A stretch of 64,000 nt of DNA from Bugula neritina (lineage: Eukaryota > Animalia > Bryozoa): NCBI GenBank assembly GCA_964035545.1, contig OZ037767.1, positions 32,256,628 through 32,320,627 of the forward strand. The letters run 5' to 3'. The notes under the pieces are model-generated. The model worked only from the letters and a program-made list of their open reading frames with translations. It was not told where the DNA came from and did not search any database. Made by a program: the position numbers and the translations under genes. This document shows positions 5,366 to 39,548 of this stretch, piece after piece. Positions within the stretch are counted from its first letter, which is position 1, and every line of letters begins with the position of its first letter.

Positions 5366-8300
5366 TCAGTATCTGTTGAGGGAGGGTGGGGATGCGTACC
5401 CGGTGTGAGCACGGTTAGACCGAGGTGTGCTATATTGAACACTGGGTGGGCGGTAGGGGGTCTCCCCTTCATCAGCAATAGAGAAGTGGTCCTTGCTGGG
5501 GTGCTCAGTCAGTGGCTGACTATGGGAAGGGGGCTCAGCCCTACGCCCCTTACTATACTGACTGCCACCGTAGATAGGATTGTGGTCTACCCTGCCCGGA
5601 GTAGCGTAGGGGCTGGAGTTGTAGGACTTATTGTGCTGCCCCCGGATATACTGGCCAGGGGCGTAAACCCCCTGACTAGCCATAGACTGGCTGTCGGAGT
5701 AGCGGGAACTGCGCATGCTCCGCACAGAGCGATGGTCAGCGTACTGGCCATCAGTTATGTTGTCGTCTGAGGGGGCGTGGTAGAAGTTACCTCCATCGTC
5801 TTCTCCTCCAAACTTCTTGCACTTCCAGACGAGGATCACAGCTATGACTAGCAAGATGATGATGGGTATGATGACAGCAATGGCTATGACCCACGGCCTA
5901 GTTGGTTCTACAACATACATAATAGTAGTATTATAGACTATAGACTAGTGTGTAGTATAACAGTACAGTATCATAACATAGCAGTGTAATAGTACAGACT
6001 AGTATAGTTTAGGGGTGGTAACATAACCTACCCTGTCTGGGCCGAACATTTGGGTTCACAGGGCTATCCGTGGCTGTCACAGGGGGAGTAACTTCAAACA
6101 GAGAGACTTTGGTTTGTGCCAGGTTCTCCTCTCCATCAGGTCTGGTAACTATACATTCTATCACTGAGTTGTTGACAGGAAACACACCTGCATATCAACA
6201 GTTGTATTCAACATATCTACATGTCAACAGATGTACTCAACATAGCAACAGTTGTATTCAACATATCTACATGTCAACAGATGTACTCAACATAGCAACA
6301 GTTGTACTCAACATATCTACATGTCAACAGATGTACTCAACATATCAACAGTTGTATTCAACATATCTACATGTCAACAGTTGTATTCAACACATCAACA
6401 GTTGTATTCAACATATCTACATGTCAACAGATGTACTCAACATAGCAACAGATGTACTCAACACATCTACATATCAACAGTTTTACTCAACACACATGTA
6501 TATCTACAGTTGTATTCAACACATCAACAGTTGTATTCAACACTTACTAGTTGCGTTAGTCACAGTGAAGGTAGCGTAGTGTCTCTTCACATTTAGAGAC
6601 AAAGTGTCTACGTAGAAGTCCTTTATCCCGGGATGGTCACGAGTTAGAGTCTCGGTATAAATTCTAAACTCGATGTCACTAGGAAATGGGTAAGATTCGG
6701 CGTAACAAGTTATTTTAAACTCTTCAGTGATACCAAAGTCAAAGGAATCCCTTTTGTCGTTAGTTAGCTGTGCCTTTGGCTGGCCTGCAAGACATACATA
6801 ATATATAGTAGTAATATATAGCATATAGTAGTAATATATAGCATATAGTAGTAATATATAGCATATAGTAGTAACATATAGCGTATAGTAGTAATATATA
6901 GCATATAGTAGTAATATATAGCATATAGTAGTAATATATAGCATATAGTAGTAATATATTGCATATGGTAGTAATATATAGCATACAGTAGTAATATATA
7001 GCATATAGTAGTAACATATAGCGTATAGTAGTAATATATAGCGTATAGTAGTAATATATAGCATATAGTAGTAATATATAGCATATAGTAGTAATATATA
7101 GCGTATAGTAGTAATATATAGCATAATTATAGTAGTAATATATAGTGTGTAGTAGTAATATATAGTATATAGTAGTAATATATAGTGTAGAGTAGTAACA
7201 TATAGCGTATAGTAGTAATATATAGTGTGTAGTAGCAATATATAGCATATAGTAGTAATATATAGCATATAGTAGTAATATATAGCATATAGTAGTAATA
7301 TATAGTGTATAGTAGTAATATATAGCATATAGTAGTAATATATAGTATATAGTAGTAATATATAGTATATAGTAGTAATATATAGTATATAGTAGTAATA
7401 TATAGCATATAGTAGTAATATATAGCATATAGTAGTAATATATTGCATATAGTAGTAATATATAATAAATAGTGAGTACTGTTACTAACTTTGAATGCTG
7501 AAAGATGTACTTTCGAGTGGATCAGCATATCTGAGTATATTAACAGTACATCTGTATTCACCACCGTGTTGTATTGAGTTGTAGTTAGATATGACCAGAG
7601 TTGAGTTGGCACCAAAGGAGTCAGTCTGATATTTTATTCCGTTGATATTATTCTGTAGAATTGCCCAGTTTCCTTGAGTCTTGGCACTATTCCAATGCCT
7701 GTCGCATATACTGTCACACATATATATACTGTCACACCTATATACTGTCACACATATATATATATACTGTCACATATATACTGTCACATATATATATATA
7801 TATATATATACTGTAACATACACTCTGTCACACACACACACACTGTCACATACACACTGTCACACACACACACACTGTCACATACATACACTGTAACATA
7901 CACACTGTCACATACACTGTCACACACACACTGTCACATACATACACACTGTACTATACAGGTAAACATGACATTACCAGACGACACTCATAATCTTAGA
8001 GTAGCTGATGTCAGTTGGAGTCATATCCACTGAACAGTAGAATCTAAGGTTGCTTCCATAAACGTCTCGGCTAAAGTCTGTACTTTGTGGAACTAAGGCA
8101 ACTGTAAATCACATGACATGAGCAAAGAGTTGACAGGAAACTCAGAGAAGGTTACAGAGTGACACCCTTTGAGTGACACCCTTTGAGTGACACCCTTTGA
8201 GTGACACCCTTTGAGTGACACTCTCTGCGTGACAGAGTATATTATACACTAGTATAGACGTATATTATACACTAGTATAGACGTATATTACACACTAGTA

Positions 8301-24619: not shown

Positions 24620-24937
24620 GTGAGCTAAGAAAGGGAAGGTAGACTAAGGAAGGGTAGAGAAAACTTGGATACTAATATAAGGAAGGGAGGATAGGCTAAG
24701 GAAGGGTAGAGAAAACTTGGATACTAATATAAGGGAAGGGAGGATAGGCTAGGGAAGGGTAGAGAAAACTTGGATACTAATATAAGGAAGGGAGGATAGG
24801 CTAAGGAAGGGTAGAGAGAACTTGGATACTAATATAAGGAAGGGAGGATAGGCTAAGGAAGGGTAGAGAGAACTTGGATACTAATATAAGGAAGCGAGGT
24901 AGGCTAAGGAAGGGTAAAAAAACACGTAGATACTAAT
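24620..24937. repeat. ~58-bp purine-rich tandem repeat ending immediately before the TRIM-SH2 start codon
   Basis: Units GGCTAAGGAAGGGTAGAGAAAACTTGGATACTAATATAAGG...; the last degenerate copy reads GATACTAAT-ATG. Confidence 0.9.
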
Positions 24938-27900
24938 ATGGCGGACTGCCGATCACCAAAACTGTCTCTTAGTCAGCTGGCTGACTCATTCCTGTTGAAT
25001 ATTGAATGCTTCATATGCACAGAAGTGAAGGAATTGCGGCAGCTGCCATGTCAACACATGATGTGCTATGACTGTTTAGGTGGGTATGCAACACTAGACT
25101 ATAATATATCATAATAATTATACTAAGGATACCATTTCTAATTATATAAAAGTAGATCTCCCTGATTGTAATGCCTAATTAATATTGTACAATACGCCTT
25201 TGGATCTATTGCTGAACACAGTTCATTGGGCACACAATGCGAGTCAATCTGATTACCCATAATCCTTTTGTATTTCTTCTTCTAAGAAATGCGTTAACTC
25301 CACCTTCAGCTTTCATAACCTGGTGAGCACTGGAGACTGCAGCTACTAAGGGTGGTGCTCACTAAGTCCCATGCCAGTTTATACGTAGTACCAGTTCCAA
25401 GACATAAGTTGCTATATTCATTTTGTAATAAACAGTAACTGAAAAGTTAAATTGACTCTGATTCTTTAGTTGAGTTAATTTGTAGACATTAGAAGAATCA
25501 GCCATGTTTAGATGTTGATACACTGGTCTGGTGTGGTGTGGTCTGGTCTGGTCTGGTGTGCTGCATGCTCTGTCAAATTGATATCCCTAATAACCTAGCT
25601 TACCATAACAATTATTACCACCTTTGTGAGAATAAGCTGCTATAGGCGCATGTGGGCTAAAATATCCTAGGGCTAAAAGTGACTGGAATTACAAATCTTT
25701 CCAGTATTTTATGTACGTGAGGAGCTGTATTGTTGATTTACTAAAGCATTGGCATTTTTCACAGAAAAAGCCTTCAATTGAACACAAGCTATTCTACTGA
25801 TATATACTCCTGTTTCTAAGCAATAACTTGCCAAATTATTAGGTCAATCATATTTCAAACAAAAAAGTTAAAGACAGAACGTTTTCTGTTGTTTTACTTT
25901 TCACAGCTGGTAGTTAAAAGCTTTAACTCGAAGTAGTATAGTTTTATCTCGGCCACTCTACAACTTCATGGTCTCTACTTGCTGATAAGGAGCGTTGTAT
26001 GATACAGAAAACCTAATCCAGACCAGCCTGAGCAAAGGTAAACCTCCGTGCTGCTGCTATTGTAAGGAAAACATCACAGAGGAAGCTGCAGGTTACCCCA
26101 TCTGTAGACTAGCTGCCAATCTGCAAGAGGATGTTAAACAATTTCGGCAGGCTTTAGCCAATCACGATTCAGCAACAGGTGCAAAACTTTACCTATATAT
26201 TGACTCATGTCTGTTGAAGTTATGTAATCATCCACTGCAATAAATACTTTAACTATATGGACATGTCTGTTGAAGTTATGTAATCATCCACTGCAATAAA
26301 TACTTTAACTATATATGGACATGTCTGTTGAAGTTATGTATATCATCTACTGATGTATACTCCTGTTTCTAGCAGATGGAGAAGCGCCATGTCAAGGGTT
26401 CGACTGCAAAAGACTCATTGACTTTTACTGCCACAACTGCCACCTATGTCTATGCTACAAGTATGTTTGGTTATCCACACAAAACTTCTAAGTGCACATA
26501 ACTCCTAGGTGTACAAAATCTCTCTCTACACTTGGGCTTAAAATTTTCAAGACTTTAAAATTAATATCTGAAATAATAATAAGTGTCTCCTGAGATGAAA
26601 CACCTGTCGAGTCTATCAAAGAAATTACTTCTCAGTATTTTTAAAATAAATATATACGCATTGACTGAATAATATCTATAGAAGTGTAAATGTAAGTATA
26701 GGCGTAAGTGTAGGTGTAAGTGTAGACCTGTGTAAGTGTAGGTGTAAGTGTAGACCTGTGTAAGTGTAGGTGTAAGTGTAAACGAGTTAGTGAAAGTGCA
26801 AGTGTAAATAAACTTCATGTTTTCAATTGAAATACTGGTGTGAGGAGATGTGTATGATTATATGCTGTGTGCTAGAGTAAGAGATGTATAGTTATATGCT
26901 GTGTGCTAGAGTAGGAGATGTGTATGATTATATGCTGTGTGCTAGAGTAGGAGATGTGTATGGTTATATGCTGTGTGCTAGAGTAGGAGATGTGTATAGT
27001 TATATGCTGTGTGCTAGAGTAGGAGATGTGTATGGTTATATGCTGTGTGCTAGAGTAGATGTGTATGGTTATATGCTGTGTGCTAGAGTAGGAGATGTGT
27101 ATGGTTATATGCTGTGTGCTAGAGTAGGAGATGTGTATGGTTATATGCTGTGTGCTAGAGTAGGAGATGTGTATGGTTATATGCTGTGTGCTAGAGGAGA
27201 TGTGTATGGTTATATGCTGTGTGCTAGAGTAGGAGATGTGTATAGTTATATGCTGTGTGCTAGAGTAGGAGATGTGTATGGTTATATGCTGTGTGCTAGA
27301 GTAGATGTGTATGGTTATATGCTGTGTGCTAGAGGAGATGTGTATGGTTATATGCTGTGTGCTAGAGTAGGAGATGTGTATAGTTATATGCTGTGTGCTA
27401 GAGTAGGAGATGTGTATGGTTATATGCTGTGTGCTAGAGTAGATGTGTATGGTTATATGCTGTGTGCTAGAGGAGATGTGTATGATTATATGCTGTGTGC
27501 TAGAGCAGGAGATGTATAGTTATATGCTGTGTGCTAGAGTAGGAGATGTATAGTTATATGCTGTGTGCTAGAGGAGATGTGTATGGTTATATGCTGTGTG
27601 CTAGAGTAGATGTGTTGCACCTATATAATATTATACAAAAAATATTTATAGCTCCTCATTATAACCTCTATGTAATATGTCACGTTGTGTCATGTGACAT
27701 CATGTCATGTTATGTCACATAACGCCACGCCATATCCCAAGATGTCACATCTTGTTGCATGCAATGGTATATATAAAGAGTGTTTTTACCATGACAGCTT
27801 TTTGTACCTAAAATAACTATTATACTTGAACACTTCAACATCTGCTTTGATATGACATGCAGCTTTACTAACAGGTGCACCAAGACTTCCTGTGAAGTCA

Positions 27901-29899
27901 GTGAAACTAACAAACACGACGTTGTTGAGTTCGATGAAAAAATACAAGACTGCAAATCCAGATTTGTAGGGTGGATGACTGAAAAGGAGAAAGAAAAAGA
28001 GGAGCTGATTGAGAAGGTGAGCCATTTAATTAATTTGACTATCAACTGTTGAATACATGAGACTTAGTAACTATCAACTGTTGAATACATGAGACTTAGT
28101 AACTATCAGCTGTTGAATACATGACACTTGGTAACTATCAACTGTTGAAATACATGACACTTAGTAACTATCAACTGTTGAAATCATGAGACTTAGTAAC
28201 TATCAACTGTTGAATACATGAGACTTAGTAACTATCAACTGTTGAATACATGACACTTAGTAACTATCAACTGTTGAAATACATGAGACTTAGTAACTAT
28301 CAACTGTTGAATACATGACACTTAGTAACTATCAACTGTTGAAATACATGAGACTTAGTAACTATCAACTGTTGAAACATTTTCTGTCACAGCAATCCCG
28401 GCTAAAGCTCCATCTTCACACTCAAACTTCAGACATTTCCATGGACAAGCTTTCTGAGGTGATAGACTCTCTAAACTCAATAAAGACAGAGTACCAGAAC
28501 AACAACAGACTCCTAGCCGAAGTTGACTCCGTCATCCGTCAGTTTCATGTTGACATCAACTTAATTCCTGGTCCAGAATTCATTAAAATAGTGGAACAGC
28601 TACACATGAAGCGGGAGCATCTCCCAGCGCCCCTGGCTGACTCAGAAAGATTTGACAACTATCCAGGTTAGTCATTTCTTGTCATTATGAACTCTCACAC
28701 GCCAGTCTCAATGATTGCCAATTGATTGAAATAAAAATTGAAAGCAAAAAAGTGGACTCACTAAATAGCACTCCCCCCAACTGCATCAGAGTGAAGCCTG
28801 CACACAACAGCTCTATATTTTGATGTCTGTGCAAAGTTTCCGTTAATAGTACAAACATTTATTCCATGTAGCTGAACCTTAATTGCTTCTTTACTCTTTT
28901 ACATGACATAGTTGTAAGACTCCCAAACCAATTGAATGAGACTCCCAGACCTCCAGTTCCAAGTGCTAGACTAACCGCAGCACGTACTGAAGGGAGACAG
29001 ACAGAGCATTCTCCTGGTAACAAACAAGCTATATTTATAACATATATAATTTAAATGTTCCATAATTCTGCAATTATATAACTACTTTATTTATAGCAGC
29101 TGTGAAAGAAGCTAGCCCTGTTTCTTCTCCATCTTTTGAGGTCAATACAGACTTACCTTTGGAGGAACAAAAGTAAGTAGATATTTAGACTTATACCTCT
29201 AGAAAAGAAAAGTAAGTAAATATACAGACTTATCCCTAAAAGGAAAAGTCAAGTAGATGAACATAGCTGCTCTCAAATAGTTTACACAAATATTTGCAGC
29301 TGGTATCACGGAGCTATTGGGATGCAGCGCTGTGAAGATATTTTGAGTTCTGAAGGAGAAGGAGCGTTTCTGGTGAGAAGCAGCACGACCTCTAGAGATC
29401 AAAAGACTCTTGTTGTCAAGTTAGTTCATACTTTTTAGTTTCACAACACCAGGGCTTGAAAGAGCAAATATTTGGAAGTGAGGCTGTTATTTCTTGCTTT
29501 GGTATAAACTGAGATCTCCTCCTATATAATTCTATGCTATGTTAGTGCATGAAGTAATTCTAGCAATTTGCTGCAGGTGGTTGCTGTTTTCATGCAGTGG
29601 AAACTACATGTAGACTTTTTCTCCAAGATTTGACAGTCATCTGGCTCTCCTTTATTATAAGTATTTATTTCAGGGTAGAAAATGAAACTATAAACCTAAA
29701 GATAGTGCCCCACCCTAAAGGAGGCTGCACTATAGGACACGATTCACAGAAGACATTCTCTTCGGTGTCGGAGCTGGTCAAGTATTGCCGTGACAACATA
29801 ATGCAGACTAAGGGAAGACGAGTCCTAACTCTGCGCTACCCGATTCCACGGCATGACGATGACACTTATGTCACCTTCTTACCGTGCCTGAAGAAATGA
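24938..29899 (+). CDS. TRIM-like E3 ligase with C-terminal SH2 domain (RING-HC, B-box, coiled coil, Pro-rich linker, SH2; ~447 aa). Exons 24938-25079, 26008-26178, 26373-26460, 27875-28016, 28393-28666, 28912-29016, 29097-29172, 29300-29419, 29674-29899
   Basis: GT-AG, phases consistent, 1344 nt. RING CFIC...RQLPCQHMMCYDCL...CCYC; B-box-like CQGFDC...FYCHNCHLCLCYKC...H; helical KEKEKEELIEK; RPPVPSAR; SH2 WYHGAI...GAFLVRSS...FSSVSELVKYC...LTLRYPI. Confidence 0.88.
26845..27615. repeat. 33/36-bp minisatellite GAGTAGGAGATGTGTATGGTTATATGCTGTGTGCTA
   Basis: Tandem units inside a TRIM-SH2 intron; explains ORF 26884-27519. Confidence 0.95.
28040..28378. repeat. ~32-bp minisatellite AACTATCAACTGTTGAATACATGAGACTTAGT
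   Basis: Fills intron 28017-28392. Confidence 0.93.
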
Positions 29900-30533
29900 G
29901 TTCTTAACTCCGTCAGCAAAGTTTAATATATAGTAATATTTATACAATTCTTATTATATACTGTTTTATATTATTCAAAAGCACTATTATATATATTCAA
30001 AAGCACTATTATATATATTCAAAAGTACTATTATATATATTGAAAAGATTGAAAGTTAATAATCAGCCAAGTATTAACTGTTTTTAACATAAAATAATTT
30101 TTAAAAAACAACCAAAATACTCTAAAAACACAAAACTCCAGAACAAATTATCCTACAGCTTAACTCATTTATAAATCTTTTAAATTTTTAAGAATTGGTA
30201 ATAATTTATGCCAACTAACTTGTTGAATTGAAATTGATAAAATTGCTAATTTGTAAAAACTAAGACAAAAGATGTGTGTGAATAACTCATTAGGTTCTGG
30301 GAGAATGTGAAATCAAAAACTGTAGCAGGTGATGGGTGCTTCCATAGTATATAATAATTCTATAGTATGTAGTATCACAGCATTAGGTAGCTTATTGTAA
30401 CTACAGTATTGTAAATACTGTAAGTGAAGGCAGTCATTGTATACTCTTGGAATTTCAGTTGTTCTTTCTCCATCAGAGTTATATACTCTTTGATTGTATA
30501 TTAGATGGTTACTCAGTATAGCCTATTAGATAG

Positions 30534-33500
30534 TTACTGAGATTCACACCTACAAACAGTCCAAAGTAAACATTTGACAACACAACAGAAGAATTTATTA
30601 TTTTACCTGCTGAATACTATTAAGTGATTAATGAGAAGCTGTGATGTCAAAATATTTTTAATTTAGTTCAATCATAGCCTCAATCCCTGTGAGAGATGAG
30701 GGTGGGTAGACACCCCGCCCTTTGATATCAATGACATCACTCGACACTTACTGTTGACTTCCGAGTTCGTTCATCATCCTTTGATGCCGTCGCATAGCCT
30801 GCCTCAGATCTCCCTCGTCCACTTCTCTCCTGGATCCACCACTGGCGTGTCGGTCAACTAACTCCAACTCACTGAGTAGACAACTCCACAATCCAACTCT
30901 ATTCGGGAAATCAATCCTAGCTACTTTACCTACAAAACAATCCTAGCTATTTTACCTACAAAACAATTTTAGCTTCTTTACCCACCAATCAATCCTAGCT
31001 ACTTTACCTACAAAACAATCCTAGCTATTTTACCTACAAAACAATTTTAGCTTCTTTACCCACCAATCAATCCTAGCTACTTTACCTACAAGTTATTGTA
31101 CCCATTCAGCTTATACAACTCTATCTCTGCCTCTATCCTTATTAAGTTTTTGTAACAAAATTTGGTGAGTTTTTCAAAAATAAAACTGGTGAAGTTTTTG
31201 ATAACACATGACCTTGACCTACACAAACACATGACCTTGGCCTACACCAACACATGACCTTGACCTACATCAACACGTAACCTTTACCTACACCAACACA
31301 TGACCTTGACCTACATCTTTCATCTCACCGTATTCAGGGTGGGAGTTGATCACTTTGACAATGCCTTCATCCTGGTGTGTGATTCCAGCCCAGCCAGATT
31401 GTGGCTCAGAGACCGACTTGAGAACCTGCAACAGTTTCACTCAGCTTTGAGTTGCCATAAAATACTTTCTGTATATAACCTATGAATTGACTCTGATACA
31501 CCAAACACAGTGTGTGATCGCTTGTTATAGTCCGTGGTCTAATAAAATACAACGGGTGCTTTCTCTACTCACCCTCACTTTGTCTCCAACCATTATAGAT
31601 CTCACTCTCTCAATCTCCGAGAGAAGCCCTCGCCACTCCGCACACTCGGGGAACCGGACTACTACATCCTCACCGCACACAGAGATTAGAGTTCCAATAC
31701 TATTGGACGTCACGCCAGCCCAGCCTCTTTCTGGCTCATGCACAGCCTTGTGGATCCACACTTCCTCCCCTACCTTATGACGTCAACTTTATATGACATT
31801 CACCAGTATGACAGACTACACACTATAAGCAGTTGCAGTACAAACTGTTGAGATATAAACACAGATATGTACATACTATATACACAGGTACATACAGACT
31901 ATAAACACACCTTCAGAGGTTCTGGAGCTACTGTTTCCAGCTCATCAAATATTCCCTTCCAGTTGCTGGAGTCAGGGAAGTCAACGATTACTTCACGAGT
32001 CGAATTTGGACCTCGGTTTCTGATCTCCCTGAGAGTTCCAATGCTACAGACAAACACCTTAGTATAATGTACTAGTGAGTAGTGTATAGTATAGCACACT
32101 AGCGAGTAGTGACTAGGGTATAGTATAGCATACTAGTGACTAGTGTATAGTATAGCACACTAGTGAGTAGTGACTAGGGTATAGTATAGCATACTAGTGA
32201 CTAGGGTATAGTATAGCATACTAGTGACTAGTGTATAGTATAGCACACTAGTGAGTAGTGACTAGGGTATAGTATAGCATACTAGTGACTAGGGTATAGT
32301 ATAGCATACTAGTGACTAGTGTATAGTATAGCATACACTAGTGACTAGGGTATAGTATAGCATACACTAGTGACTAGGGTATAGTATGGCATACTAGTGA
32401 CTAGGGTATAGTATAGCATACTAGTGACTAGTGTATAGTATAGCACACTAGTGAGTAGTGACTAGGGTATAGTATAGCATACTAGTGACTAGGGTATAGT
32501 ATAGCATACTAGTGACTAGTGTATAGTATAGCACACTAGTGAGTAGTGACTAGGGTATAGTATAGCATACTAGTGACTAGGGTATAGTATAGCATACTAG
32601 TGACTAGTGTATAGTATAGCATACACTAGTGACTAGGGTATAGTATAGCATACACTAGTGACTAGGGTATAGTATGGCATACTAGTGACTAGGGTATAGT
32701 ATAGCATACTAGTGACTAGTGTATAGTATAGCACACTAGTGAGTAGTGACTAGGGTATAGTATAGCATACTAGTGACTAGGGTATAGTATAGCATACTAG
32801 TGAGTAGTGTATAGTATAGCACACTAGTGAGTAGTGACTAGGGTATAGTATAGCACACACTAGTGACTAGGGTATAGTATAGCATACACTAGTGACTAGG
32901 GTATAGTATAGCATACACTAGTGACTAGGGTATAGTATAGCACACACTAGTGACTAGGGTATAGTATAGCACACACTAGTGACTAGTGTATAGTATAGCA
33001 CACACTAGTGACTAGGGTATAGTATAGCATACACTAGTGACTAGGGTATAGTACAATGTTTCACTTACTCGCCACGTTTAGTACCCCCCCACTTGAAGAA
33101 TGGCTCTTCAACTGAGTCCTTCACCTTCACAAGGTCACCCAAAACAGGAAGTCCATGAGCTACATTTGACTTGTCTAGTTTCGAGGTGTTGCCAACCCAA
33201 CCAGAGAAACCAGGAAACAGTACAGCACACTGGAATAAGCCAATCATAATATGAGACAGTCTACTAGCCACTACACAGTCTACTAGTCACTGCACAGTCT
33301 ACTAATCACTACACAGTCTACTAGTCACAACACTACACAGTATACTGATCACTACACAGTCTACTAGTCACTACACTACACAGTATATCTACAGTATATC
33401 TACACTACACTACACAGTATACTAGTCACATGTATATCTACACTACACAGTATACTAGTCACATGTATATCTACACTACACTACACAGTATACTAGTCAC

Positions 33501-36500
33501 GTGTATATCTACACTACACAACACAGTATACTAGTCACGTGTATATCTACACTACACAGTATACTAGTCACATGTATATCTACACTACACAACACAGTAT
33601 ACTAGTCACATGTATATCTACACTACACAGTATACAAGTCACATGTATATCTACACAACACAGTATACTAGTCACATGTATATCTACACTACACAACACA
33701 GTATACTAGTCACGTGTATATCTACACTACACTACACAGTATACTAGTCACGTGTATATCTACACTACACTACACAGTATACTAGTCACGTGTATATCTA
33801 CACTACACTACACAGTATACTAGTCACGTGTATATCTACACTACACTACACAGTATACTAGTCACGTGTATATCTACACTACACAACACAGTATACTAGT
33901 CACGTGTATATCTACACTACACAGTATACTAGTCACGTGTATATCTACACTACACAACACAGTATACTAGTCACGTGTATATCTACACTACACAGTATAC
34001 TAGTCACGTGTATATCTACACTACACAACACAGTATACTAGTCACGTGTATATCTACACTACACAGTATACTAGTCACGTGTATATCTACACTATACACA
34101 GTATACTAGTCACGTGTATATCTACACTACACAGTATACTAGTCACGTGTATATCTACACTACACAGTATACTAGTCACGTGTATATCTACACTACACAA
34201 CACAGTATACTAGTCACGTGTATATCTACACTACACAACACAGTATACTAGTCACGTGTATATCTACACTACACAGTATACTAGTCACGTGTATATCTAC
34301 ACTACACAACACACAACACAACTCATTCCATCTCTTACATCTCCTTTTGAGTTTATCTCATGGATGTATCCCACACTCAGGTGATCTAGCTTCTTTTCTA
34401 AGAAACTGGGTTTGAGAAGCTCAACATCCACCCGCAACCTCACACTGTCCCCGGCTTTAAACTTCCCGCTATTCTCTGCAAAAGATGAGTTAGTGTCAAG
34501 CCCTTCCTTTTATACGACTGCTGCTTGTTCTTTAATTTACTGTGGAACTACAAACCTACCGGAAGTGCTAGAAAGAACGTCTCGCAAACTCTGCAATACT
34601 TCGCTCGCTTCTTTCAACTCGCTATCTTGGTCATGTGACACAGAGGTAGAGGACTTTAGTCTCTCTACCATCTCTTTGGTGTTGGAGGAAGCAGAGCGCA
34701 GTTTTTCTAACTTCTCTTTTAAAGTAACTCTTTTTGATTGGATAATTTCTTTGATAGCTGCTATCTATAATTGAAGGTACAAGACCTACTGTACTAATAC
34801 ATATACTGTACTTACACATATACTGTACTTACACATATACTATACCTACACATATACTATACTTACACATATACTATACCTACACATATACTATACTTAC
34901 ACATATACTGTACTTACACATATACTATACTTACACATATACTGTACTTACACATATACTATACTTACACATATACTATACTTACACATATACTATACTT
35001 ACACATATACTATACCTACACATATACTGTACTTACACATATACTATACTTACACATATACTATACTTACACATATACTATACTTACACATATACTGTAC
35101 TTACACATATACTATACCTACACATATACTGTACTTACACATATACTATACTTACACATATACTATACTTACACATATACTATACTTACACATATACTAT
35201 ACCTACACATATACTGTACTTACACATATACTGTACTTACACATAATACACATAATACACATAATACATAATACATAATACACATTATACTATACCTACA
35301 CATATACTATACTTACACATATACTGTACTTACACATATACTGTACTTACACATATACTATACTTACACATATACTATACTTACACATATACTATACTTA
35401 CACATATACTATACTTACACATATACTATACTTACACATATACTATACTTACACATATACTGTAAGTTGTGATGAGTGTTCAGAGAAGTGCAACAGAGTT
35501 TACCTTAACTTCTGACTTCTCCTTCAAAGAGTTCACTTTCTCTTCTAACAAGCTGTGTATTTTATCTTCCATTTTCTGCTCTGTGCTCTCCCAGTCACTT
35601 ACCAGCTCTTCATACACTTTCCTCTGCATTCAACAAACATGATTATCTGCAGTGTATATTTTAGTTATATGATCATCTGCAGTGTATATTTTAGTAACAT
35701 GATCATCTGCAGTGTATATTTTAGTAACATGATTATCTGCAGTGTATAGTTTAGTAATATGATTATCTGCAGTGTATAGTTTAGTAACATGATCATCTGC
35801 AGTGTATATTTTAGTAACATGATTATCTGCAGTGTATATTTTAGTAATATGATTATCTGCAGTGTATATTTTAGTAACATGATTATCTGCAGTGTATAGT
35901 TTAGTAATATGATTATCTGCAGTGTATATTTTAGTAACATGATTATCTGCAGTGTATATTTTAGTAACATGATTATCTGCAGACTGCAGGGTATATTTTA
36001 GTAATATGATTATCTGCAGTGTATATTTTAGTAATAACATTATCTGCAGTGTATAGTTTAGTAATATGATTATCTGCAGTGTTGAATAAAGAAGTTGTCT
36101 TTACCTTCTCTTCTGCAGTTCCAAGTAACTCCTCACTTTTATCAAAGACTGGCTGAAATTTTAGCTTTGGTTTATAAGATTCGTCATCTAAGAAAAATAA
36201 TATAATATGAACACATCTGTAGAGCTAAATAATATAACATGAACACATCTGTAGAACTAAATAATATAATATGAACACATCTGTAGAATTAAATAATATA
36301 ATATGAACAACTCTGTAGAACTAACAATAATATAATATGAACACATCTGTAGAACTAAATAATATAATATGAACAAATCTGTAGAACTAAATAATATAAT
36401 ATGAACACATCTGTAGAACTAAATAATATAATATGAACACATCTGTAGAACTAAATAATATAATATGAACACATCTGTAGAACTAAATAATATAATATGA

Positions 36501-39500
36501 ACACATCTGTAGAACTAAATAATATAATATGAACACATCTGTAGAACTAAATAATATAATATGAACACATCTGTAGAACTAAATAATATAATATGAACAC
36601 ATCTGTAGAACTAAATAATATAATATGAACACATCTGTAGAACTAAATAATATAATATGAACAACTCTGTAGAACTAAATAATATAATATGAACACATCT
36701 GTAGAACTAAATAATATAATATGAACACATCTGTAGAACTAAATAATATAATATGAACACATCTGTAGAACTAAATAATATAATATGAACAACTCTGTAG
36801 AACTAAATAATATAATATGAACACATCTGTAGAACTAAATAATATAATATGAACACATCTGTAGAACTAAATAATATAACATGAACACATCTGTAGAACT
36901 AAATAATATAATATGAACACATCTGTAGAATTAAATAATATAATATGAACACATCTGTAGAACTAAATAATATAATATGAACACATCTGTAGAACTAAAT
37001 AATATAATATGAACAACTCTGTAGAACTAAATAATATAATATGAACACATCTGTAGAACTAAATAATATAATATGAACACATCTGTAGAACTAAATAGTA
37101 TAATATGAACACATCTGTAGAACTAAATAATATAATATGAACACATCTGTAGAACTAAATAATATAATATGAACACATCTGTAGAACTAAATAATATAAT
37201 ATGAACAACTCTGTAGAACTAAATAATATAATATGAACACATCTGTAGAACTAAATAATATAATATGAACACATCTGTAGAACTAAATAATATAATATGA
37301 ACACATCTGTAGAACTAAATAATATAATATGAACACATCTGTAGAACTAAATAATATAATATGAACACATCTGTAGAACTAAATAATATAATATGAACAC
37401 ATCTGTAGAACTAAATAATATAATATGAACACATCTGTAGAACTAAATAATATAATATGAACACATCTGTAGAACTAAATAATATAATATGAACAACTCT
37501 GTAGAACTAAATAATATAATATGAACACATCTGTAGAGCTAAATAATATAATATGAACACATCTGTAGAACTAAATAATATAATATGAACACATCTGTAG
37601 AACTAAATAATATAATATGAACACATCTGTAGAACTAAATAATATAATATGAACACATCTGTAGAACTAAATAATATAATATGAACACATCTGTAGAACT
37701 AAATAATATAATATGAACAACTCTGTAGAACTAAATAATATAATATGAACAACTCTGTAGAACTAAATAATATAATATGAACACATCTGTAGAACTAAAT
37801 AATATAATATGAACACATCTGTAGAACTAAATAATATAATATGAACACATCTGTAGAACTAAATAATATAATATGAACACATCTGTAGAACTAAATAATA
37901 TAATATGAACACATCTGTAGAACTAAATAATATAATATGAACACATCTGTAGAACTAAATAGTATAATATGAACACATCTGTAGAACTAAATAGTATAAT
38001 ATGAACACATCTGTAGAACTAAATAATATAATATGAACACATCTGTAGAACTAAATAATATAATATGAACACATCTGTAGAACTAAATAATATAATATGA
38101 ACACATCTGTAGAACTAAATAATATAATATGAACACATCTGTAGAACTAAATAATATAATATGAACACATCTGTAGAACTAAATAATATAATATGAACAC
38201 ATCTGTAGAACTAAATAATATAATATGAACACATCTGTAGAACTAAATAATATAATATGAACACATCTGTAGAACTAAATAATATAATATGAACACATCT
38301 GTAGAACTAAATAATATAATATGAACACATCTGTAGAACTAAATAATATAATATGAACACATCTGTAGAACTAAATAATATAATATGAACACATCTGTAG
38401 AACTAAATAATATAACATGAACAACTCTGTAGAATTAACAACAATTAGTACATTTTTAACCAAATTATTTTTTAAACGACTGAATTAATTGTGATGAACT
38501 AACTATTTTATAATTTCTTGACTATAATGGTAATTCTATTATAAGTAGAAATAATTATATGCCCTATAATACCTTGCCAATATAATGGCTCATCGCAGGA
38601 CACAGTTGTAAAGCTGACATATCATCTAACTATTGTGTACAAGCTACAAGCACTATGACTAAACCCTAAGACCTGCCTTCTGGCTTTCCTTGGGTGGAGC
38701 TCTCTGCAGAAGTGATGGTTTCTGCAGCCTCTGAGGCTTTCCTAGCCAACTCTGTCTGCTGCACAATGCTGGCCAGTTGTTTGGTAAATAGACTGTCTGG
38801 TAGACTCTCAAAGCCTCCATTAGGAACAAACAACTCCTGTATTCAAAATAAGAAGCTCTTCTAAGGGACTTGAAACAGGCTATAATAATTGCCAGTGTAG
38901 AGAAAGTTGATAATAAAAGTATTTTATATGTTCCTACACATAATTGCATTTATTTAACTACCTTTTTTATTACTTGAATATGACATCATCACATTCCATG
39001 ATGCAATATATTGGGAATTCCACCAGTAACAGTGGTGTATAGGTATATTATATAATCAGTTTTGAAATGTGAATAGATCAAACAGACGCAGACTTTCACT
39101 CATATGTATGTCTTATGTCGTATGCCGTTGCATATTTTTCATCCACTACTCATGGGTAAAAGGCTGAGTTTCAGGAATATAAAACTTAGTCAATGTAGAG
39201 ATAACTTCATATTTTTACCAATTAAACTTTGAAATATCGATTGATTTCACATTGTGTACTTTGAATCTTTATATTTTCAGTTAGTAGGTGTGCTCGATTC
39301 TGTTATTTCCCAATGAGGTATAGTCAGCATAGGTACAGTGGTTTCACGCATGTGCAGGTAATGTGTATTTGTCTTACCCTTAGACACAGAGGGCACTTGT
39401 ATTTGCTCTCAACTACTTTGAGGCTATTTAGACACTCTAAGCAAAGTGTGTGCTGGCATGGTAGTTGTTTCTGTGTGTCCTTATCATCTAAGCAAATCTT

Positions 39501-39548
39501 GCATTGCATCATCTCTCTTATTTGCTCTTCTAATGCTTGCAGTGCCAT
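30534..39548 (-). CDS. RING-HC, coiled coil, four HERC2/KEG-type SH3-like repeats, CaaX; E3 ligase paralog D (~553 aa). Exons 39548-39378, 38836-38677, 36187-36105, 35623-35504, 34764-34560, 34475-34339, 33229-33069, 32043-31911, 31773-31573, 31425-31329, 30929-30752, 30549-30534
   Basis: RING CKIC...KQLPCQHTLCLECL...KCPLC; repeats such as VGEEVWIHKAVHEPERGWAGVTSNSIGTL...VVRFPECAEWRGLLSEIERV and VGDKVRVLKSVSEPQSGWAGITHQDEG...IDFP...WSCLLSELELV; 1662 nt in frame; one GC-AG intron; last exon gives CESQ* (unspliced alternative stops at 30748). Confidence 0.85.
32065..34320. repeat. Two intronic minisatellites: ACTAGTGACTAGGGTATAGTATAGCAT-type (32065-33055) and CAGTATACTAGTCACGTGTATATCTACACTACA-type (33255-34320)
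   Basis: Tandem units either side of exon 33069-33229. Confidence 0.93.
34800..36080. repeat. 19-bp array TACTTACACATATACTA/G-type (34800-35460) and 30-bp array GATTATCTGCAGTGTATATTTTAGTAACAT (35637-36080)
   Basis: Tandem units filling two introns of paralog D. Confidence 0.93.
36195..38435. repeat. 32-bp minisatellite CTGTAGAACTAAATAATATAATATGAACACAT (~70 copies)
   Basis: Highly homogeneous tandem array in intron 2 of paralog D. Confidence 0.97.

Follow-up and report, generated by a model that had tools for sequence, protein, structure and literature searches.

A putative TRIM-like gene of Bugula neritina in which SH2 exons stand in place of a beta-propeller exon

The window analysed here is a stretch of 64,000 nucleotides from chromosome 3 of the bryozoan Bugula neritina (contig OZ037767.1, positions 32,256,628 to 32,320,627 of the forward strand); positions given without a prefix are positions within it. 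At 24938-29899 on the plus strand, about 32.2816-32.2865 Mb of the chromosome, it holds a nine-exon gene model that runs from a RING domain to an SH2 domain. The explanation we favor, with somewhat better than even confidence, is a lineage-specific bryozoan chimeric gene of RING, B-box-like, coiled-coil and SH2 parts (RBCC-SH2), a TRIM-like family member in which the propeller exon is replaced by linker and SH2 exons. A member of a locally expanded TRIM-like family would have lost its C-terminal beta-propeller exon, and in its place would stand four exons, the first two encoding a disordered linker rich in Pro and Ser and the last two the SH2 domain.

A script that checked the model found AG...GT at every internal border and consistent phases throughout. 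The exons total 1362 nt, which is 453 codons followed by TGA, with the stop at 29897-29899. The first-pass annotation had claimed nine phase-consistent exons that appear in the open reading frame track only as fragments, and the border and phase script, together with the reading frame list, bears this out. The window is AT-rich animal DNA (GC content about 0.36), and across the model GC content is 0.41-0.50 in exons versus 0.19-0.37 in introns. Genomic DNA run X1 covers 24900-29950 at about 98x, introns included, with zero differing letters and zero joints. The absence of differing letters from these reads means that the nine exons are no errors of assembly. In the genome, exons 5 and 9 each occur in a single copy.

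The N-terminal half and its paralogs

A genome search with exons 1 and 2 identified at least 12 loci that hold paralogs, spread over chromosomes 5, 9 and 2. In the nine loci that were fetched, exons 1-5 recur in the same order and with the same borders, at 27-66% identity exon by exon, with all zinc ligands conserved and the helical segment shared. Chance is excluded for exons 1-5 because the paralogs have the same borders, and the N-terminal half truly belongs to a TRIM-like family that has expanded locally.

Exon 1 (24938-25079) carries the start codon and the first six RING ligands and ends in phase 1. Its matches in at least 12 paralogs stop at residue 47, and several of these paralogs also begin Met-Ala. 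Exon 2 (25990-26178) supplies the last RING Cys pair (C-x2-C, then Lys) and a conserved linker, YP[IV]CR...NLQ; ten paralogous exons match it at 27-45% identity, with the Cys pair conserved. All eight RING ligands are thus present with standard spacing, C-x2-C-x10-C-x-H-x2-C-x2-C in exon 1 and the final C-x2-C in exon 2. Pfam RING models score 15-20 bits on exon 1 (the best, zf-RING_2, 20.5 bits) and stay below threshold because an intron splits the domain, so that only half of it is present. A family profile of exon 1 searched against PDB gives the RING domains of TRIM28, TRIM2 and TRIM56 as best matches (E about 1e-4), with Cbl RING domains among the weaker matches. The hydrophobic E2-contact residues are retained, Ile after the first Cys and Pro before the third, as is the Lys after the last Cys.

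Exons 3 and 4 encode a zinc module. Exon 3 (26373-26460), which aligns end to end with its paralogs, holds the N-terminal part, C-x4-C-x7-C-x2-C-x4-C, and its five Cys residues are invariant in eight family members. Exon 4 (27875-28016) holds the remainder, C-x4-C-x7-H, and the beginning of a Lys/Glu-rich helical region; its paralog matches are weak, with the C...C...H pattern retained. The combined spacing, C-x4-C-x7-C-x2-C-x4-C-x2-C-x4-C-x7-H, comes near the B-box1 pattern and departs from it in the first pair (x4) and in having Cys at the seventh position. Exon 5 (28393-28666) encodes the coiled-coil or helical segment; paralogs align over its residues 1-70, and its donor is the first GT past the conserved part. 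An AlphaFold2 model of exon 5, made with the aid of its paralogs, places helices at 2-13, 17-57 and 60-75, the middle one 41 residues long, ahead of a disordered end, with predicted local distance difference test (pLDDT) values up to 95. The modeled helical segment fits a TRIM coiled coil, with dimerisation predicted.

What follows exon 5 sets the paralogs apart from the RBCC-SH2 gene. In seven of the nine fetched loci a single-exon propeller of about 250 residues lies downstream of exon 5, followed by a short last exon. The propeller exon gives a sub-threshold NHL match (18.8 bits, cut-off 20), and its structure model has about 20 beta strands (pLDDT 76.7) and matches solved beta-propellers with E down to 4e-10. 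Since the exon is weakly NHL-like and models as a beta-propeller, the paralog family has the layout RING, B-box-like module, coiled coil and propeller, as in TRIM-NHL proteins. A tblastn search with three paralog propellers found no propeller remnant anywhere in the window.

Some paralogs show irregularities of their own. The propeller exon of at least one chromosome 5 paralog has an in-frame stop (L017:3785-4504, minus strand), and that of another (L015:1397-2123, minus strand, also chromosome 5) can be aligned only in three separate pieces, a pattern suggestive of frameshifts. Damaged copies are therefore part of the family. In a third paralog (L014:1240-2775, minus strand; C5:559239-560774), two long open frames of 283 and 228 residues lie between the propeller and the last exon. 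Some of their parts are reverse-transcriptase-like and others Cys-rich, and together they have the look of a mobile element inserted at this place.

The Pfam B-box model returned at least 149 matches and 312 candidates across the genome. Most matches come from exons 27-30 residues long that span positions 2-31 of the model and stand in dense arrays on chromosomes 6, 7 and 8 (for example C8:6.6-7.3 Mb, 9.3-9.4 Mb and 10.1-10.4 Mb). The TRIM-type gene arrays that they mark are very large and separate from the subfamily to which the RBCC-SH2 gene belongs.

Four minisatellites accompany the gene model. One (24626-24939, 52-bp x 6) extends into the start codon as far as its second base; a second (26206-26352, 56-bp x 2.6) lies within intron 2 and a third (26843-27609, 36-bp x 22) within intron 3; the fourth (28038-28380, 32-bp x 10.7) fills intron 4 from just past the donor to just before the acceptor. 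Read contigs break inside the two large arrays. The acceptors of exons 3 (26370-26375) and 7 (29094-29099) are tandem tag|cag sites three bases apart, and since either site preserves the frame, one-residue isoforms are possible at both exons.

The SH2 domain

Exon 8 (29300-29419) encodes the N-terminal half of the SH2 domain, from betaA to betaC, and exon 9 (29674-29899) the C-terminal half, from betaD to betaG, followed by a 15-residue tail and the stop. Over positions 1-39 of the Pfam SH2 model PF00017, exon 8 scores 31.9 bits (cut-off 21), and the genome scan gives it 30.9 bits; it also matches the SH2 domains of ABL, SHP2 and GRB2 in PDB. Exon 9, too divergent for detection by Pfam, shows a weak alignment to the alphaB-betaG part of the p85 N-terminal SH2 domain, and language-model features assign both exons to SH2 fragment clusters (exon 8, 0.92; exon 9, 0.93).

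The closest sequences are found in the same genome. Within the genome, exon 8 is matched best, at 41% identity, by the first SH2 exon of an adaptor-type gene (C4:12.146-12.147 Mb), and exon 9 matches the second SH2 exon of that gene with 30% identity over 54 residues (pairwise E 7e-07). The intron that splits the SH2 domain has the same position in both genes, after betaC. Because both are SH2 exons, chance is excluded for exons 8 and 9. The C4 adaptor-type gene differs in having a disordered N-terminus rich in Tyr motifs and no RING, and its SH2 domain keeps the alphaA2 Arg and betaD4 His. At these identities, its similarity is too low to call it the donor of the RBCC-SH2 domain. The adaptor-type gene as a whole (L041:2750-7700 and L040:8969-9644, minus strand; C4:12.146-12.155 Mb) has long Ser/Pro/Thr-rich exons that carry YE.PWD-like Tyr motifs, and its C-terminal SH2 domain is the one split at the shared intron position. 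At least 51 SH2 exon matches occur in the genome; nowhere else do these 51 matches lie near matches to the family RING exons, so that no second RBCC-SH2 locus was found.

The FLVR motif (29367-29378) is intact, including the betaB5 Arg, and is followed by Ser-Ser (29367-29384 in all), in alignment with the FLVRES of ABL. At alphaA2 the residue is Met where ABL has Arg. At betaD4 it is Asn where the paralogous C4 domain has His, and the betaD6 Lys is kept, aligned to the IHIKIV of that paralog. These alignments and coordinates agree with the first-pass annotation, which had claimed a kept FLVR Arg, a missing alphaA2 Arg and betaD His, and an acidic Tyr motif in the tail. SH2 domains hold phosphotyrosine (pTyr) through betaB5 together with a basic residue at alphaA2 or betaD6, and the betaB5 Arg of FLVR is the most important of these, absent from only 3 of more than 120 human SH2 domains (PMC7530234). 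By the classes of the same review, the domain is to be placed, from its sequence, with the 'SAP-like' kind of pTyr-holding SH2. Since the betaB5 Arg and betaD6 Lys are both kept, as in that kind, the missing alphaA2 Arg and betaD4 His would be no argument against pTyr binding.

A fused gene whose SH2 domain does not read pTyr is a rather improbable alternative. The domain would then serve phospho-independent binding or self-association, like the JAK SH2 domain, or would bind pSer/pThr, like that of SPT6. Atypical SH2 binding modes of this sort are documented (PMC7530234), the two residues at alphaA2 and betaD4 are missing, and the C-terminal half, which determines specificity, is unlike any known SH2. 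The FLVR Arg at betaB5 with the Ser-Ser that follows and the kept betaD6 Lys speak against it.

In the tail motif, DDDTYVTF (29855-29878), the Tyr is preceded by an acidic run and has Phe at +3; six residues lie between the end of the domain and the Tyr. As a sequence the motif resembles a kinase substrate and equally an SH2 ligand.

One transcription unit or two

Between the two halves of the model lie exon 6 (28912-29016), a Pro-rich linker of symmetric phase 1-1 with the motif RPPVPSAR at 28947-28970, and exon 7 (29097-29172), a Ser/Glu-rich linker that runs from phase 1 to phase 2. With exon 5 ending in phase 1 and phase 2 required at exon 8, the phases fit only by way of exon 7, which makes the shift, exon 6 being symmetric. 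A codon model was trained on the paralogs only and then applied to the nine exons, all of which score positive in the predicted frame (exon 4, +12.4). Exon 6 scores +8.9 bits in frame versus -9.4 and -9.1 out of frame, and exon 7 scores +10.2 bits versus -6.8 and -7.4. The scores of the linker exons exceed those of 99.7% of intronic windows of equal length, which are also the windows that trained the background. GC content is 0.50 in exon 6, versus 0.37 and 0.19 in the flanking introns, and 0.42 in exon 7.

Ahead of the SH2 domain, exons 6-8 and the sequence just upstream of them contain no in-frame ATG; the first lies inside the domain, after betaA. For this reason no separate complete SH2 protein could start there. 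The next gene downstream is on the opposite strand, so whatever follows exon 5 must lie before about 31.2 kb. With the propeller remnant absent as well, the SH2 exons are the only candidate C-terminal module. From the phases, the codon usage, the absence of an ATG and the lack of a C-terminal module elsewhere, we infer that all nine exons belong to one mRNA.

Two transcription units, a truncated RBCC-only gene that ends after exon 5 and a small SH2 adaptor made of exons 6 or 7 through 9 with an unrecognised first exon, would account for the same exons, and we hold this to be distinctly unlikely. Small SH2-only adaptors do exist, as in SAP and EAT-2 (PMC7530234), no RNA reads link the halves (the sole run being genomic DNA), and a stop and a polyadenylation-type AATAAA follow the exon-5 donor closely. 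Set against these points are the missing ATG in or upstream of exons 6, 7 and 8; the coding character of exons 6 and 7 in exactly the frames that continue exon 5; a gap of just 245 nt between exons 5 and 6; and the presence of a C-terminal recognition module in seven of the nine fetched paralog loci.

Several results weigh against the single chimeric gene that we favor. Read-through of the exon-5 donor meets a stop after one codon, and AATAAA stands at 28730, 63 nt further on; an RBCC-only short isoform or gene is for this reason possible. Within 700 nt after the main stop codon there is no canonical AATAAA or ATTAAA. The only sequencing run that covers the locus, X1, is genomic DNA and uninformative on splicing. 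Exons 6 and 7 have no homologs, and the support for them comes from codon and GC statistics. Searches, family scans and folds of the spliced model were made exon by exon. The SH2 domain is very divergent, with neither the alphaA2 Arg nor the betaD4 His. The B-box assignment is a further such point: Pfam zf-B_box has no match on exon 3 or exon 4, each scanned singly; the family profile of exon 3 has no match in PDB; and hhalign of exon 3 with Pfam-positive B-box exons of the same genome aligns 10 columns at a probability of 8%. The intron in those Pfam-positive exons falls about four residues later than the intron in the exon 3/4 module, and intron position consequently lends the B-box no support. 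The module, assigned from its Cys spacing, is best called B-box-like. Of the RING, the B-box and the coiled coil claimed in the first-pass annotation, the RING stands, on its ligands and the family profile, and the coiled coil stands, on the exon-5 model; the B-box was confirmed by none of the three comparisons.

A last point of this kind concerns exon 9. A phmmer search against 1.84 billion representatives, drawn from 15 billion predicted proteins, returned no true relative, the query being the 74-residue exon, so that distant relatives or other RBCC-SH2 proteins are still possible. Two matches were rejected as repeat proteins whose score is the sum of weak repeated matches. Since the exon-9 sequence is absent from the library of 15 billion proteins, neither an annotation nor an assembled transcript of the gene is recorded there. 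A C-terminal SH2 half with no relative among the representatives fits a lineage-specific gene, as the first-pass annotation had proposed.

The same result could instead mark a young, unexpressed or decaying chimera, a duplicate that lost its propeller beside relic SH2 exons and whose frame is open for lack of time. On the side of this explanation, which we rate as unlikely, are the lack of any transcript or protein on record in the 15-billion-protein library; the high divergence of the SH2 domain, with its C-terminal half lacking a relative; the damaged copies in the family, such as the paralog propeller exon with an in-frame stop; and the minisatellites that fill introns and abut the start codon. 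It is opposed by 453 codons open over nine exons with every splice site canonical, by the retention of all zinc ligands and of the SH2 core motifs, and by codon usage that is in frame in all exons. A divergent SH2 domain with an intact frame argues for age under constraint, against recent decay.

The gene downstream, on the minus strand at 31288-39548, is a RING ligase of different design. Its RING is complete in a single exon (39324-39548, minus strand), scores up to 32 bits with Pfam and has the same LPCQH..C..CL motif. Exons at about 31288-33271 on the minus strand resemble the Mind-bomb SH3 repeats (SH3_15, 22 bits, just below the cut-off).

Comparison with known ligases and proposed function

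A survey of TRIM proteins lists classes I-XI with no mention of SH2 (PMC3503706), which upholds the claim that SH2 is not a standard C-terminal class. A C-terminal SH2 domain lies outside the recognised classes, whose modules are PRY-SPRY, NHL, filamin, FN3/COS, PHD-bromo, MATH, ARF and transmembrane. No description of an architecture joining RING, B-box or TRIM to SH2 was found in the full-text literature, the search being of that literature and not of domain-architecture databases, and a survey of sea-star SH2 transcripts makes no mention of RING or B-box. The RBCC-SH2 architecture may nonetheless have occurred before outside B. neritina. The nearest comparison is with the paralogs of the same genome on chromosomes 5, 9 and 2, which form a TRIM-NHL-like expansion, class VII or subfamily C-like. 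They share exons 1-5 with the RBCC-SH2 gene and continue into the single-exon propeller and short last exon, whereas the RBCC-SH2 gene ends in linker and SH2. Because the paralogs examined carry a beta-propeller there, the SH2 domain would sit where the substrate-binding module of the family normally is.

In function the closest systems are Cbl, Hakai and the SOCS-box proteins, and the gene belongs to none of the three. Like c-Cbl and Cbl-b, the model places an SH2-type domain that would read pTyr and a RING on one polypeptide (PMC3507883). In Cbl the order is four-helix bundle, EF hand, variant SH2, linker helix and then RING, whereas here the RING comes first, followed by zinc module and coiled coil, with SH2 last. 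No Cbl N-terminal domain was found in the Pfam scan of any exon. The suggested convergence with Cbl can be kept as a functional analogy; domain order and scaffold differ. The relation of RBCC-SH2 to Cbl is, on this comparison, one of analogy, not homology. Hakai (CBLL1), likewise a RING E3, acts as a dimer in recognising pTyr targets (PMC3507883). It differs in reading pTyr with a zinc-coordinated HYB domain formed on dimerisation, with no SH2, and has no coiled coil.

SOCS/CIS proteins combine an SH2 domain with a SOCS box and are substrate receptors of cullin-5 RING ligases. The likeness lies in the use of SH2 as the substrate-recognition module of a ubiquitin ligase. SOCS/CIS proteins lack a RING of their own and recruit one via the SOCS box, whereas the RBCC-SH2 gene has its RING in cis. 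Pfam found no SOCS box in the model, and only 15 residues lie between SH2 and the stop.

If the nine exons make one protein, its coiled coil would dimerise it, as in TRIM ligases, and its RING, with E2-contact residues and the basic residue after the last Cys kept, would recruit ubiquitin-loaded E2. The SH2 domain, through its betaB5 Arg and betaD6 Lys, would dock the ligase onto tyrosine-phosphorylated proteins, and ubiquitination of a target would thereby depend on tyrosine phosphorylation of that target. The tail Tyr, if phosphorylated, might be bound by the SH2 domain. Binding in trans between dimers would be more feasible than binding in cis, since only six residues part the end of the domain from the tail Tyr; this is speculation.

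A more far-reaching version, which we think very unlikely, is that the bryozoan lineage independently built a dimeric pTyr-directed ligase by putting SH2 where an immune-type TRIM family has its hypervariable propeller, as a Cbl-like off-switch of receptors. Through an antiparallel coiled coil, the ligase would offer two SH2 domains to receptor tails that are doubly phosphorylated, and the targets would be the recognition receptors of the colonial animal. Phosphorylation of the acidic tail Tyr would close or polymerise the ligase. One candidate client would be an immunoglobulin (Ig)-type receptor gene about 19 kb upstream, with a cytoplasmic tail rich in Tyr motifs.

At 5366-5920 on the minus strand, a frame within a 'paired Ig receptor' region, about 19 kb upstream of the RBCC-SH2 gene, encodes a transmembrane helix and then about 150 residues of cytoplasmic tail, in which Tyr motifs are numerous and one is NPxY-like. 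From its sequence, this tail is a conceivable client of the SH2 domain.

If the halves turn out to be two genes, what is left would be an ordinary truncated family member beside an orphan SH2. The known origins of a coupling between tyrosine phosphorylation and ubiquitination are, to our knowledge, few: Cbl, the SOCS-box proteins and Hakai. If the chimeric gene that we favor is real, a TRIM scaffold joined to SH2 would be a further independent solution to that coupling and would supply a compact template from nature for degraders that depend on pTyr. The gene would likewise be a clear instance, found in nature, of an expanded ligase family retargeted by exon shuffling, with the enzyme half kept and the recognition module exchanged. 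The exchanged module would be one that reads a post-translational mark, and the list of TRIM C-terminal modules would be widened.

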